Assembly (NCBI GenBank): GCA_965644295.1
Contig: CBFFRP010000363.1
Span: 186,001-250,000, forward strand
Source of the DNA: Paraphysomonas bandaiensis
Lineage: Eukaryota > Protista > Chrysophyceae
DNA: 64,000 nt
Direction of reading: 5' to 3'
Made by a program: the position numbers and the translations under genes. Below the pieces are notes generated by a model. The model was given only the letters and a program-made list of their open reading frames with translations. It was not told the DNA's origin and made no database searches. Positions 1 to 60,511 of this stretch are shown piece after piece; the first letter of the stretch is position 1, and every line of letters begins with the position of its first letter.

Positions 1-1770
1 CGTAGCCCAGCCAAATTGCCATCTTTGATTAGTGGCGAATTTGGGGAAGGTAGTGTTAGACCACTCTGCGATGTTCGCTAAGTAGTCTGGGTTGCAAACG
101 AAGCCCCCAGCGAATGAAGATACGTCCATTCCCTCATCCCATATGCCTCCTGCACCCACAAAAGTAGCAGTACCGTCTTCCTGTGGAATTTTCGTAAACG
201 ATGCGCATGTGCTACCACAGGTCCCATCTGTGAGGATGATAAGCTTCTCTGGTGGCACAAATTTCGCAGGACGGAAGCCATTTGATGGCATTGCCTCTGC
301 TTCTCTGCAGTCAAGTGAAAATATATTTGTACGCCAATTTGTTACTCCTCCCTGGGTTACATTTCTTCCTGGGTAATAATATGCCCTACCGTCAGGGAAT
401 GACTCCTGAGTATCTCTGTCCAAAATTTGTTCGACATCTCCGGCGTAGGGATACGGGTCAGGGGCATTAACCACGTCGATATACCTGTCCATTAGAGGAG
501 AGTGTGGAAGATCATATCGCATCTGGACTTTAGTGTGGTCATTTTCATACTCCTCAACAAGCAGTTCAATGAGCCTCAGACCAAGGCATACATACCCTCC
601 TCCATTTTGCATTACATCTACTACAATCATGTCGAAGTCCACCGACAAGCAAGTCTCAACATCATCCAAGAAGCCTTCCCAAGCATCTAAATAGTCTTCT
701 CCTGGAGGAGAGAAACTAGCCACTTTCATGACTAATACTTTAGAGACGTCAGCGTCCTTCGCAGAACTCCCGGTGACACTTTGCACGAAGCAACTGACAT
801 AATACGGTGAGTCAGGGGGGAGGATTTCCTCTCTATCAGGTCGTGATTCATGCAAACGGGTAGTTAGAGTAGGAGCAGGTTCGTGCACGGAGCGATGCAT
901 CGGGTCAGTCACAGAGGAAGACTGCTTCAGTTGTGGAGCGGCAACCTCTTCGACATCCACTGCCGCACACAACGTTGTGTTGGCAAGCCCTGTAGTGTAG
1001 GAAGCCAGCCATGGTATAGTGTGAACTGATCCATCCGATAGAGTCAACTGTAAATCCTCTACGGGAAGTACTCCCACTGATATAGCACTACGATATAAGT
1101 AGGATCTGATTGCAGCGTTGAATCGAATTCCCCTGTTGTTACTTCTAGTCTCATGGGTGTCTCCCCACCCGGATACTTCCGTAGTAAATTCCAAACCGTT
1201 GAGTAAAGTTACTTGCTGGTCAATAAGAACATCAATATCAATCTCTGGATAGACTGCAGCATATGTGTCTGTATACAAATTCCGCATAAGATAGACCACT
1301 GGTTCATTGTCTAAAGTTTCCTCTGAGTTGTCGTCTTCGACGCGCATGTCGAATGCAAAAGGCTGAATAAATATCGCATTGTAGCAGGCAGGCTTCTGAT
1401 AACGAGTGTGAGCATCAATTGTCCTCTGAAAGATACTCTGTAGATGCTCCTGAAAGTCGATATCTGTAGCAAAGCCCCCAGCATTGACGATATCTTGAGT
1501 AGCAGACAGCTCGCCCTGGATGTCCATAGATATGGAGTAGGGGGGACCTGTAGCATGATACAACGCATCAAATCCAAAGTTCTCGAGAGACTGAGACAAG
1601 ACATCTAGAGTAGTATTCGCCCACTCCTCATTGAAAGGAATGGAATAGAGACAGTCGAGAGCATCCTCTGCAGTGGCGTAACAAGTCTCACCTACTGCAC
1701 AGGAGAGACTGCACTCCTGTCCATACACTGCAGATAAAAACCAAGCCAATATGATGTACAGGAAACGCAT
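1..1770 (-). CDS. Secreted peptidase S41 family protein (eukaryotic/CPAF-like type), 3' end beyond the window
   Basis: Absent from the ORF track because it runs off the edge. Manual translation from ATG 1770 gives signal peptide MRFLYIILAWFLSAVYG, then CLYSIPF, DVMQNGGGYV and IILTDGTCGSTCASF (S41 catalytic Ser motif). No stop seen before base 1. Confidence 0.85.
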   Translation of the reverse strand, partial: MRFLYIILAWFLSAVYGQECSLSCAVGETCYATAEDALDCLYSIPFNEEWANTTLDVLSQSLENFGFDALYHATGPPYSISMDIQGELSATQDIVNAGGFATDIDFQEHLQSIFQRTIDAHTRYQKPACYNAIFIQPFAFDMRVEDDNSEETLDNEPVVYLMRNLYTDTYAAVYPEIDIDVLIDQQVTLLNGLEFTTEVSGWGDTHETRSNNRGIRFNAAIRSYLYRSAISVGVLPVEDLQLTLSDGSVHTIPWLASYTTGLANTTLCAAVDVEEVAAPQLKQSSSVTDPMHRSVHEPAPTLTTRLHESRPDREEILPPDSPYYVSCFVQSVTGSSAKDADVSKVLVMKVASFSPPGEDYLDAWEGFLDDVETCLSVDFDMIVVDVMQNGGGYVCLGLRLIELLVEEYENDHTKVQMRYDLPHSPLMDRYIDVVNAPDPYPYAGDVEQILDRDTQESFPDGRAYYYPGRNVTQGGVTNWRTNIFSLDCREAEAMPSNGFRPAKFVPPEKLIILTDGTCGSTCASFTKIPQEDGTATFVGAGGIWDEGMDVSSFAGGFVCNPDYLANIAEWSNTTFPKFATNQRWQFGWAT

Positions 1771-2278
1771 CTTATTGGATTTTAATGGACACCATAGATT
1801 AGAGTAGGAGGTGATACATACATATATACGTGATCTATCAGCGCCGCGATACCATACCACTGTGTATACATGTGTGTCCATCCATACAAACATCATGTAT
1901 CGTAGATATATATACTATATCCTATATATTGTATTCCACGGTATACCACGTATATGATGCCCTTGTGAGATCTGCTGCTGGTGATGCCAGTCGGTCATTC
2001 GACTGAAAGAAAAGAAGAGCAGAATGGAATACAATAATGACGTAACTGTATCCTGAAGGGCTACTCTTCTATATTCTTCTTCAATGCAGAAGCCTCAAGT
2101 ATCTTACGTGCATCTGAGACCAGTGTGTCCAGCCACGTCATTAAGAACTATTACATCAGATCAGCAGTGAGGGACTGTTAGCAGACCACTTCATTCATAA
2201 TTTCAAGTCACAGAGAGTTGGATCATACAGCAATAACAAACAGGACAGTTCTAACAAGCGTGTAATTAAGATTAAAAG

Positions 2279-2938
2279 ATGAAGAAAGCGATTCAGTTGA
2301 TTGTATTCTTTGCTCTAGTTGTGGTTACGATGGCATCCACTGTACCTTCATTGGATGATGTGACAGACCATCTGAAGGCTGCAAAGGAGAGTGTTGCTCA
2401 GGCAGTGGAAGGGTATCCAACCAATGTTGATAAGGCCAAGACTGAGAGGCGTGCTACTGAGATCAAGCAGCAGGCTGAAGAGTATCTGGCATCTGCTCAG
2501 ACCAATGCTCAGAAGGCTGCCCAGCAGGCATCTGAGACATATAAACAGGCTAAGGACAGTGCTGCTGAGTATGCCGAAAGGGCTCAACAAACTGCGAATA
2601 TCGCTTCCGAAAAGACATCAGAGACATATAACAAAGCCAAGGCAGCTGCACAAGATACGGCACGACGAACGTCCGAAACGTATGAGCAAGCTAAAGCAAC
2701 TACCAATGATGCTGCCCGACGAGCATCTGAGAGCCTTGAACAAGCTCGTCAGCGCGCTCAGGAATATGCGAATTCGGCGAAAGGGGCTGCTGATAACGCT
2801 GCTAAGACTTCCTCTGATGTGCTAGGCAAGACGAAAGAGCAAGCACAGGGGGCTGCAGATTCTGCTACTCGCGCGGGACAAAAGGCTTCGGAGAAAGTCG
2901 CAGAAACGTATGAGCAGACAAAGGAACGCATTTTGTAA
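2279..2938 (+). CDS. LEA group 3-like protein with signal peptide
   Basis: Hydrophobic N-terminus, then A/K/E/Q/T-rich helical 11-mer repeats (ASETYKQAKDS, TSETYNKAKAA, TSETYEQAKAT, ASESLEQARQR). No Cys or Trp. Confidence 0.75.
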   Translation: MKKAIQLIVFFALVVVTMASTVPSLDDVTDHLKAAKESVAQAVEGYPTNVDKAKTERRATEIKQQAEEYLASAQTNAQKAAQQASETYKQAKDSAAEYAERAQQTANIASEKTSETYNKAKAAAQDTARRTSETYEQAKATTNDAARRASESLEQARQRAQEYANSAKGAADNAAKTSSDVLGKTKEQAQGAADSATRAGQKASEKVAETYEQTKERIL

Positions 2939-58722: not shown

Positions 58723-59439
58723 CTATAAGCACACCATCATCACATATGAGGGCTGAGATGGAGACATCTGATGGGACAGTGGAGAGGAATGAGAGCACAC
58801 AGTACAGGCCAGGTGCATGTACCATACCATCATACACCCATCGAACTACACTGTATATTAGTGTAGTATTTCGTACTTTTGTATTTTCACATTTGGGGAA
58901 AGTACAAATATACAGTACAGATATCCAGTGTACTTTGTAATACGTTCGTAGTTTGTAGTTGTGGGATTTTTAGATATTAAGCATGAAAATACTGTATATT
59001 ACGATGGTTTTAACAAAAATCTCCGATTTTATACTATTAGGATAAAGCGAGTGACCATATTCAGTTTCTTTTTCAGTTTCACTTTGTCCATTGAAGATTC
59101 GGTGTAATGAGGACGTATTTTTTTTCAGTGATATCTACAGCAGTGTACTCTGTATACTCTGCTGTATGTAGTATGGTACAATGAGTGTATACAGAGCTCA
59201 GCAGATGAACGTCTATAGCGTGTAGCATATGTAGAAACTAGTAGAGATTAAGTCCCCTGTTGTGTACACCATAGCAATATACCATACATCGTATTGTATG
59301 CATTATAATCTGCTTCTACTGCACTAGAAAAGAATAGCGCTTCGCAATACCAAACACACTCTATTAAGGGCTACTGGGATTGCAAAGAGGCCATTATAAT
59401 TGTATTAGCACTGATAACAGCTCACTGGTCAACTGAGAT

Positions 59440-60511
59440 ATGGCTCGCGACGAAGAGTATGATTATCTTTTTAAAGGTATGTTGATGACGTAGCGAAGTG
59501 GTTGGGGGTAATTCTATGCATAGTTGTATTGATTGGTGACTCTGGTGTCGGAAAGTCCAACCTTCTATCTAGATTTACTAGAAACGAATTCAATTTAGAA
59601 TCTAAGTCTACTATCGGTGTTGAATTTGCTACCAAAAGCATCAATGTTGATGGGAAAGTTGTAAAAGGTGTGACACCAGACTTTTTCGATAAATATATTT
59701 CACAATGCCTTTAGCACAAATTTGGGATACCGCTGGCCAAGAACGATACCGCGCCATTACCAGTGCGTACTATAGGTAGGTGCATGATACCTTCCGAAAT
59801 GTAAAGAGTTATTTTTATATTAAAGGGGTGCGGTTGGAGCATTGTTGGTGTACGATATTTCGAAACATGTTACGTTTGAAAATGTGGAGAGATGGCTGAA
59901 GGAGCTCCGCGACCACGCTGAGCCTAATATTGTCGTCATGTTAGTTGGAAATAAGGTATTTACATATATTTGTATGGTTGCATATACTAATTGTGAAATA
60001 TTTTCTCATGTTTACACGTTATAATTGTAGAGTGACCTCCGCCACCGCCGGACAGTGCCAACCGAAGAAGCGATGGCTTTTGCTGAGAACAATAACTTAG
60101 CTTTTATCGAAACGTCAGCCCTTGATTCCACTGGTGTAGAGGAGGCATTTAGGCAAATATTAACAGGTCCGAGTTATCACTTGTGGCATGTTATGCACTA
60201 ATATTTTTATATTGTGTACAATACACTAATGACGTTGTACATTTATATGTTACTTACCTAACATATTGGAAGTGGCATAATTTCGGTGTCTTGGTTGTTG
60301 CTTTGAATTGTATTGAACCGCTATGTACAACAACCGATGTGAGAATTCCTTTAATTTTTTACTTCCCTTAGAAATTTACCGCCTTATGAGCCGCAAGACT
60401 ATAGCAGCAGAAGGCACTCCGAGTTCCTCCTTGCCAACCGGACAAACACTCACTGTCACTCCTGAAAACACAGGCACTTCTAATACGAAAAAGAATGGCT
60501 GCTGTAATTAG
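59440..60511 (+). CDS. RAB11: Rab11 small GTPase (6 exons)
   Basis: [12 protein letters not shown]|[58 protein letters not shown]|SDL, ETSA, C-terminal CCN. Confidence 0.97.

Follow-up and report, generated by a model that had tools for sequence, protein, structure and literature searches.

The closest described parallel to the gene layout that we discuss here comes from the brown algae, in which the proportion of adjacent genes lying on opposite strands can exceed 60%, and in which less intergenic DNA separates divergent genes than tandem genes, a feature associated in Ectocarpus with common nucleosome-depleted regions (10.1101/2024.02.19.579948). Further afield, the part of Table S1 available from a survey of 64 eukaryotes (PMC2871058) allowed us to compute switch rates, meaning the share of junctions between neighbouring genes at which the strand changes, of 61% in Thalassiosira pseudonana, 55% in Aureococcus, 54% in Phytophthora infestans, 63% in Cryptococcus neoformans, 66% in Cyanidioschyzon merolae and just 2% in Leishmania. 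In mammals, plants and yeast, head-to-head pairs are a minority of about 10% of genes, according to the available portion of PMC4089025, and in Nannochloropsis the bidirectional promoters called VCP2 and Ribi drove genes both ways in constructs, as described in the part of PMC5785352 open to us. No paper treating the nuclear genome of a Paraphysomonas, or the orientation of genes in chrysophytes, came up in a literature search. We have analysed 64,000 nucleotides (nt) of Paraphysomonas bandaiensis, namely positions 186001-250000 of contig 363 in an assembly of 62.6 Mb in 669 contigs (the whole of this stretch is called the window below), where neighbouring genes alternate between strands almost without a break and where, we think, each short gap between head-to-head partners is probably one shared promoter region.

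Exactly 20 genes in the window are retained by our gene finder and shuffle scoring, and their strands read - + + - - + - + - + - + - + - + - + - +. The strand therefore changes at 17 of 19 junctions, nine of them head-to-head and eight tail-to-tail, with two tandem junctions making up the rest, and an unbroken alternating run of 16 genes extends from the glutathione S-transferase (GST) gene to Rab11. An earlier note, made from the letters of the DNA alone, had listed the same genes in the same order, with the same switch count and alternating run from GST, and an independent gene finder, Pfam and the shuffle test all bring us back to them; its coin-flip probability for at least 17 of 19 switches (191/524288 = 3.6e-4) is also arithmetically correct. 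The gene finder is our own generalised hidden-Markov program, which treats both strands, models intron lengths of 35-220 nt explicitly and was self-trained on 188 kb of this genome (the window plus 124 kb from two other contigs). Each prediction was scored against 200 shuffles of its own coding sequence and retained at z >= 4, a threshold of our own choosing, and spliced genes were searched exon by exon.

How far can the strand of each gene be trusted? In the exon-by-exon scans Pfam backs that of 16 genes, four of them weakly (LEA-like, oxidoreductase, SWEET and S41), and the ESM Atlas adds the piggyBac-like open reading frame (ORF) at 0.96, which brings the strands backed by Pfam or Atlas to 17 of 20; the other three genes (7911-9342, 17674-19835 and 20826-21581) have coding scores of z 5.7-8.0 as their support. 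Co-directional genes that might have been missed, a danger raised by the earlier note, were sought throughout the window and none was found. Six additional predictions there have z of 1.2-2.9, all below 3, and none is credible as a gene; one of them, at 38702-39459, falls on a dispersed repeat resembling a short interspersed nuclear element (SINE). Neither tRNA genes nor Rfam families turned up in tRNA and Rfam searches of the window. In addition, the long minus-strand ORFs at 29604-33545 and 33838-35892 join via introns of 47-67 nt into one gene, so that they do not create an extra co-directional junction.

The window does not stand apart from the rest of the genome that we sampled, which comprises 100 kb of one further contig (C1) and 24 kb of another (C100). 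On C1, 22 genes reach z >= 4, Pfam backs the strand of 14 of them, and 17 of 21 junctions switch (p = 0.0036); the two contigs together give 20/27 switches (p = 0.0096 against 0.5). When Pfam was applied to same-strand neighbours, which might be one gene or two, most exons were without a match. Pooled over 188 kb the count is 37/46, or 0.80 (95% confidence interval, CI, 0.66-0.91), which differs from 0.5 at p = 2e-5 and from 0.66 at p = 0.024, and which compares with the level of 50-60% that the earlier note had set against its own reading. Alternation above 0.5, the mark of the stramenopile habit, is thus what we see in all three counts (17/19, 20/27 and 37/46), and the data suggest that about four in five neighbouring genes face opposite ways in this genome. 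At a base rate of 0.8, at least 17 switches in 19 has a probability of 0.24, so the window is typical of its genome, and this suggests ordinary genome architecture as opposed to a special locus.

The features of the window, with coordinates, strand and the evidence for each, are as follows.
1..1770, minus strand: S41 peptidase gene, cut by the window start (Pfam Peptidase_S41 below cut-off; 84 homologues at E <= 1e-20; z 5.4)
1771..2278: head-to-head spacer S41/LEA-like (508 nt), inside which, at 2113, the mRNA of the LEA-like gene begins
2279..2938, plus strand: gene for a LEA-like helical-repeat protein, single exon (weak YtxH/apolipoprotein Pfam matches; z 5.8; mRNA)
4276..6510, plus strand: CoA-transferase gene (Pfam CoA_trans 7.7e-36; z 9.0), tandem to the LEA-like gene across a spacer of 1337 nt
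7911..9342, minus strand: six-exon gene without a family match (gene finder; z 6.5; no Pfam match)
9491..9874: (ATAC)96 array upstream of gene 7911-9342, within the tandem spacer 9343-10870
10871..11646, minus strand: GST gene, three exons, introns about 50 nt (Pfam GST_N and GST_C)
11647..12031: head-to-head spacer GST/oxidoreductase, 385 nt
12032..12722, plus strand: Rossmann-type oxidoreductase gene (weak NAD-binding matches on exon 1; z 6.2)
13318..14721, minus strand: piggyBac-like transposase-derived ORF, 467 aa (no Pfam match; Atlas 0.96 to DDE_Tnp_1_7 clusters; z 8.0)
14722..15235: head-to-head spacer piggyBac-like/Hint, 514 nt
15236..16783, plus strand: Hint-module protein gene (Pfam Hint 6.5e-23; z 7.4)
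17674..19835, minus strand: multi-exon gene without a family match, 5' edge uncertain (gene finder; z 8.0)
19836..20825: head-to-head spacer, about 990 nt, left edge uncertain, holding (ACAT)62 at 20332-20577
20826..21581, plus strand: single-exon gene without a family match (z 5.7)
22171..24040, minus strand: ferroportin gene, four exons (Pfam FPN1 2.9e-55 and 2e-18 on two exons)
24041..24894: head-to-head spacer ferroportin/repeat protein, 854 nt, mostly (ATAC)153 at 24157-24772
24895..26284, plus strand: gene for a protein of 327-nt coding repeats (weak LVIVD match; z 13)
26285..29600: tail-to-tail spacer of AT-rich DNA (3316 nt), in which 28891-28952 is a fragment of a dispersed repeat
29601..36209, minus strand: Myb/SANT gene, about 2148 aa, four exons, introns 47-67 nt (Pfam Myb_DNA-binding; z 20)
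36210..36873: head-to-head spacer SANT/KH (664 nt) containing a cluster of GGTATACC words
36874..38487, plus strand: KH-domain protein gene (Pfam KH_1 on exons 2 and 3; z 8.9)
38929..39623, plus strand: two tandem copies of the SINE-like dispersed repeat, in the tail-to-tail spacer 38488-40211
40212..41132, minus strand: SWEET (MtN3) transporter gene (Pfam MtN3_slv weak; z 4.0)
41133..41830: head-to-head spacer SWEET/EML, about 698 nt
41831..49103, plus strand: EML-like gene, a giant WD40 propeller region plus an upstream EF-hand exon (Pfam Beta-prop_EML_2 3.6e-159)
51164..53290, minus strand: amino-acid permease gene (Pfam AA_permease_2; homologues)
53291..54025: head-to-head spacer permease/GluTR, 735 nt
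54026..55979, plus strand: glutamyl-tRNA reductase (GluTR, HemA) gene (Pfam GlutR_N, Shikimate_DH and GlutR_dimer)
56640..58707, minus strand: ammonium transporter (Amt) gene, four exons (Pfam Ammonium_transp on two exons)
58708..59439: head-to-head spacer Amt/Rab11, 732 nt
59440..60511, plus strand: Rab-type small GTPase gene, six short exons (three exons match Pfam Ras, one after another along the profile; z 6.7)
61117..61441, plus strand: third copy of the SINE-like dispersed repeat, downstream of Rab11

All nine head-to-head gaps in the window are shorter than 1 kb, at 385-990 nt from start codon to start codon. The earlier note had the nine divergent pairs right and the upper end of their range, 890 nt, too low, since about 990 nt separate the hypothetical genes 17674-19835 and 20826-21581; the EML start also moves, to 41831, with an EF-hand exon further upstream. 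For the S41 gene, a start at about 1896 and a gap of 385 nt to the LEA-like gene give way to a start codon at 1770, which opens a signal-peptide-like hydrophobic N-terminus (MRFLYIILAWFLSAVYG), and a gap of 508 nt. Across the 188 kb, the median is 681 nt for the 20 head-to-head gaps and 1563 nt for the 17 tail-to-tail gaps, a significant difference (Mann-Whitney p = 0.003); the nine tandem gaps, a small and heterogeneous sample, have a median of 1337 nt. A bidirectional promoter is usually taken to be the region between divergent neighbouring genes with transcription start sites less than 1 kb apart, and every pair in the window would fit this definition, provided that transcription begins upstream of the start codons.

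The head-to-head gaps also share a signature of short words. With microsatellites masked, GTATAC, TACAGCA/TGCTGTA and CTGTATA/TATACAG reach a density of 1.8-2.1 per kb here, but are found at 0.7-1.0 per kb in tandem gaps, at 0.15-0.38 per kb in tail-to-tail gaps and at 0.19-0.28 per kb within genes, so that they are 5-12 times denser between head-to-head partners than in tail-to-tail gaps or genes, with tandem gaps intermediate. The first and last quarters of the gap hold few of them: 80% fall in the half between, and their median distance to the nearest ATG is 220 nt. Only 7 come closer to an ATG than 100 nt, compared with the 22 that a uniform spread would give. Words such as GGTATACC, TACAGCAGTATAC and CTGTATATACAG recur in head-to-head gaps as well (for example, at 36580-36620 and 59130-59200), and they look like degenerate relatives of (ATAC)n arrays. 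The window has three such arrays, each upstream of a gene, with head-to-head gaps accounting for two and a tandem gap for the third.

What we know directly about transcription here comes from a single messenger. Window 2113-3063, which takes in the LEA-like gene, is matched at 100% identity by an mRNA contig of 951 nt in JGI sample 3300017004, and a transcriptome of this strain is therefore public. The 5' untranslated region (UTR) of this mRNA is 166 nt long and its 3' UTR 125 nt, and its 5' end at 2113 lies 343 nt from the S41 start codon. Exact-protein transcript look-ups gave no match for EML, the piggyBac-like ORF, gene 20817-21578, the CoA-transferase or the repeat protein, and homology searches with S41 and the permease gave no match above 72% identity, hence none from this organism itself, so that no further 5' ends were mapped.

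Set beside the systems with which we began, this genome looks both familiar and rather extreme. It resembles the brown algae (Ectocarpus and the Fucophycideae/Dictyotales/Ishigeales, FDI, clade) in having alternation above chance and perhaps also in having divergent regions that are shorter than tandem ones, and differs in degree (a proportion that can exceed 60% there; 0.80 here, over 188 kb with a CI of 0.66-0.91) and in setting, since brown algae have intron-rich genes and larger genomes, whereas in this genome an intron measures about 50 nt and no class of spacer is longer than the tail-to-tail one. The rates that we computed from the available part of Table S1 of PMC2871058 are at or below 66%, as against about 0.80 here, and the annotations behind them are those of 2010, whose incompleteness lowers the measured rate. 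As in the bidirectional promoters of mammals, plants and yeast, the genes of a pair are divergent, less than 1 kb apart and often unrelated in sequence; there, however, such pairs are a minority with demonstrated co-expression, while here the arrangement is the default. Nannochloropsis is likewise a compact-genome ochrophyte in which short divergent regions drive two genes, although its pairs were chosen as co-expressed and related (ribosomal proteins, VCPs), unlike those of the window, and the accessible part of that paper gives no genome-wide orientation rate. The polycistronic clusters of kinetoplastids, finally, also represent a genome-wide orientation rule tied to transcription start, and with 2% switches in Leishmania they lie at the opposite extreme.

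It was possible to look at the same layout in relatives, by finding genomic contigs that bear homologues of S41 or of the permease, from uncultured marine stramenopiles and from Triparma verrucosa. Switches were counted from stored gene calls (for L017 also with our own finder), and the samples are small and unsystematic.
L017, uncultured relative: 7/8 switches
L018, Triparma verrucosa, NCBI annotation, BRXX01000235.1:46281-68601: 6/7 switches
L019, uncultured relative: 5/6 switches
L020, uncultured relative: 7-9/10 switches
L021, uncultured relative: 2/2 switches

Together these five contigs switch at 27-29 of 33 junctions. Their tail-to-tail gaps are the shortest spacer class (34-600 nt), in contrast to the genome studied here, where they are the longest. 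In the Triparma contig, head-to-head gaps measure 139-603 nt and tail-to-tail gaps 34-103 nt. The identity of the neighbours is another matter. The upstream neighbour of S41 is the LEA-like gene in the window, whereas in L017 it is a FAD-dependent gene in tandem, in Triparma a GlcNAc 2-epimerase gene and in L019 a capsule-synthesis-type gene. GluTR adjoins the permease in the window only, and neither the homologue in L020 nor that in L021 has it as a neighbour; the permease matches are at 46-50% identity, and their orthology is uncertain.

How might all of this fit together? We consider it a good bet that the alternating layout reflects gaps of two kinds, with each head-to-head gap serving as one short shared promoter region and the tail-to-tail gaps serving as termination zones. 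The orientations, the gap sizes, the word signature with its central position and one mRNA 5' end are direct observations. From these we infer one open promoter region per gap, firing both ways, and the selective cause given below. A head-to-head gap of 0.4-1 kb between start codons would act as a single nucleosome-free promoter region, with a central block of GTATAC/TACAGCA/CTGTATA-type words, at times expanded into (ATAC)n arrays, and flanked on both sides by an outward-running core promoter and 5' UTR, the latter roughly 150-200 nt long. The tail-to-tail junction would be a longer, AT-rich shared termination zone that tolerates insertions, and this tolerance would be why the dispersed repeats gather there. 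Indeed, the earlier note had placed the repeats exclusively in tail-to-tail or downstream spacers, and the copies at 28891-28952, 38929-39623 and 61117-61441 all conform. In a compact, intron-poor genome, the likely cause would be that sharing a promoter gap, together with avoiding read-through into a downstream promoter, is favoured over tandem order. That the promoter gaps are shared between head-to-head partners is very probably correct. The earlier note went a step further, in taking a bidirectional promoter that drives two functionally unrelated genes to be the basic transcription unit. Much of this holds up, given gaps that are all below 1 kb, a shared central word signature and an LEA-like mRNA that starts 343 nt from the start codon of its partner; what does not is the strictness of the unit, as about 1 junction in 5 is tandem in the 188 kb. 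Its partners are indeed unrelated, and those of S41 and the permease change from relative to relative.

The best of the competing explanations, although we regard it as unlikely, accepts that the orientation bias is real and puts two independent promoters into each gap, with the bias arising solely from avoidance of tandem read-through or from a preference for paired terminators, and promoter sharing playing no part. Some gaps, at 854-990 nt, are certainly long enough for two promoters, two of them (53291-54025 and 58708-59439) hold two word clusters and not one, and the relatives show the same layout without the word signature. Most gaps, however, measure 385-735 nt, and two 5' UTRs of 166 nt would leave about 50-400 nt between them; moreover, the words sit centrally in the gaps and not beside each gene. 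Well-separated promoters inside each spacer, which the earlier note had named as a danger to its proposal, are unlikely in gaps of 385-990 nt.

There is far less to be said for pairs as functional, co-regulated units kept together by selection, much like operons, and we find this very improbable. It draws on the tendency of conserved divergent pairs to be functionally related in other eukaryotes (PMC2871058, in the part available), and GST and the oxidoreductase could plausibly act together. Yet this is the sole arguable case, since the partners are functionally unrelated in 8 of 9 window pairs, the S41 neighbour is different in three relatives, and the permease adjoins GluTR in the window and in neither L020 nor L021. 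Unrelated partners that differ in this way between relatives argue that the pairing is structural and not functional. As for a local accident or an annotation artefact (co-directional genes missed, or one gene counted twice), the statistic was noted post hoc, three genes are without a family match and our gene finder is crude, but that finder catches a Rab gene with exons of no more than 48 aa and yet sees nothing of z >= 3 in the spacers, the tail-to-tail spacers are poor in promoter words, which is a second argument that no genes hide there, and the pattern recurs on C1 (17/21, p = 0.0036) and in relatives, so that we give this explanation almost no credence.

Several findings nevertheless weigh against our account of shared promoter gaps and of their prevalence, and it is fair to set them out together. 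A single start site has been mapped, from one pair (S41/LEA-like), and the mRNA of the S41 partner was not found in metagenome scans. Given DNA that was reversed and locally shuffled, the gene finder still calls many small multi-exon genes; because raw predictions are over-called on such decoys, and so are not trustworthy, the z >= 4 filter was applied. The promoter words overlap and cluster, which means that their counts are not independent events and that the p-value for their central position takes too much independence for granted. They are also not enriched in the head-to-head gaps of the relatives (L017-L020), and since these share the layout without the words, the word block is not needed for it. 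C100, a short and transposon-bearing contig, switches at 3 of 6 junctions and shows no excess. Finally, the genome-wide rate rests on 188 kb, and its CI reaches the highest published value (66%).

The sampled DNA has other traits that deserve a mention. Introns are very short, at about 50-115 nt where we read them in the GST, ammonium transporter and ferroportin genes, and they are uniform across the window and the other sampled DNA (mode 45-55 nt, few above 150 nt), with donors that resemble AG|GTA(T/A)GT; the length prior of the finder is centred at 50 nt, and the peak was already present in versions without that prior. One of the four same-strand junctions on C1 contains an array, 19.6 kb long, in which a 15-nt unit (ATCTTATATACACAT) recurs about 1250 times (C1:53593-73185); the array has a GC content of 0.24 and no genes and parts two plus-strand genes, with a thiolase gene just beyond. 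C100 carries a Ty1/copia-type retrotransposon (SH3_retrovirus and RVT_2 matches; from position 9115 of piece L012 to position 3660 of piece L013), adjoined by an ORF (L012, 3966-6209) with a weak zinc-knuckle match. Within the window, the tail-to-tail and downstream spacers include 26285-29600, 38488-40211, 49104-51163 and 60512-64000, and much of the extra DNA of this genome may sit in tail-to-tail gaps. The Myb/SANT coding region holds a 51-nt tandem repeat (8.4 copies, 17-aa units, at 33964-34446). The piggyBac-like ORF at 13318-14721, at whose flanks no long inverted repeats were found, may be either a domesticated gene or a mobile element. The upstream exon of the EML-like gene, at 41831-42115, gives a weak EF-hand match, and going by this exon a calcium-binding module may form the start of the giant WD40 protein.

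What, then, does this tell us about the organism and its kin? The window is a strong example of a known stramenopile habit, and the interesting part is the size of the effect, at about 0.8 compared with the 0.54-0.66 that the available part of the published survey yields. Judging by the contigs of the relatives, the layout may not require the word block or the expansion of the tail-to-tail gaps, and both may instead be features of this lineage. More speculatively, and here we would hesitate to commit ourselves, it could be that this genome, and perhaps compact marine ochrophytes more widely, including the Parmales, switches strand at 80% or more of its junctions genome-wide, with shared two-way promoter gaps and paired termination zones as the default organisation of transcription by RNA polymerase II and tandem order as the exception, and with a TACA/GTATAC block prone to microsatellite expansion marking the shared promoters in this lineage. 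If a rate of about 80% is true genome-wide, it would provide a test case both for the preference for divergent and convergent order in compact eukaryotic genomes and for intrinsically two-way promoters and the containment of read-through. There are practical consequences too: gene finders for this clade could take orientation and the promoter-word block as priors, and the short head-to-head gaps are candidate two-gene expression cassettes, of the kind already made in Nannochloropsis. Long alternating runs in this genome, in turn, need not mark special loci.

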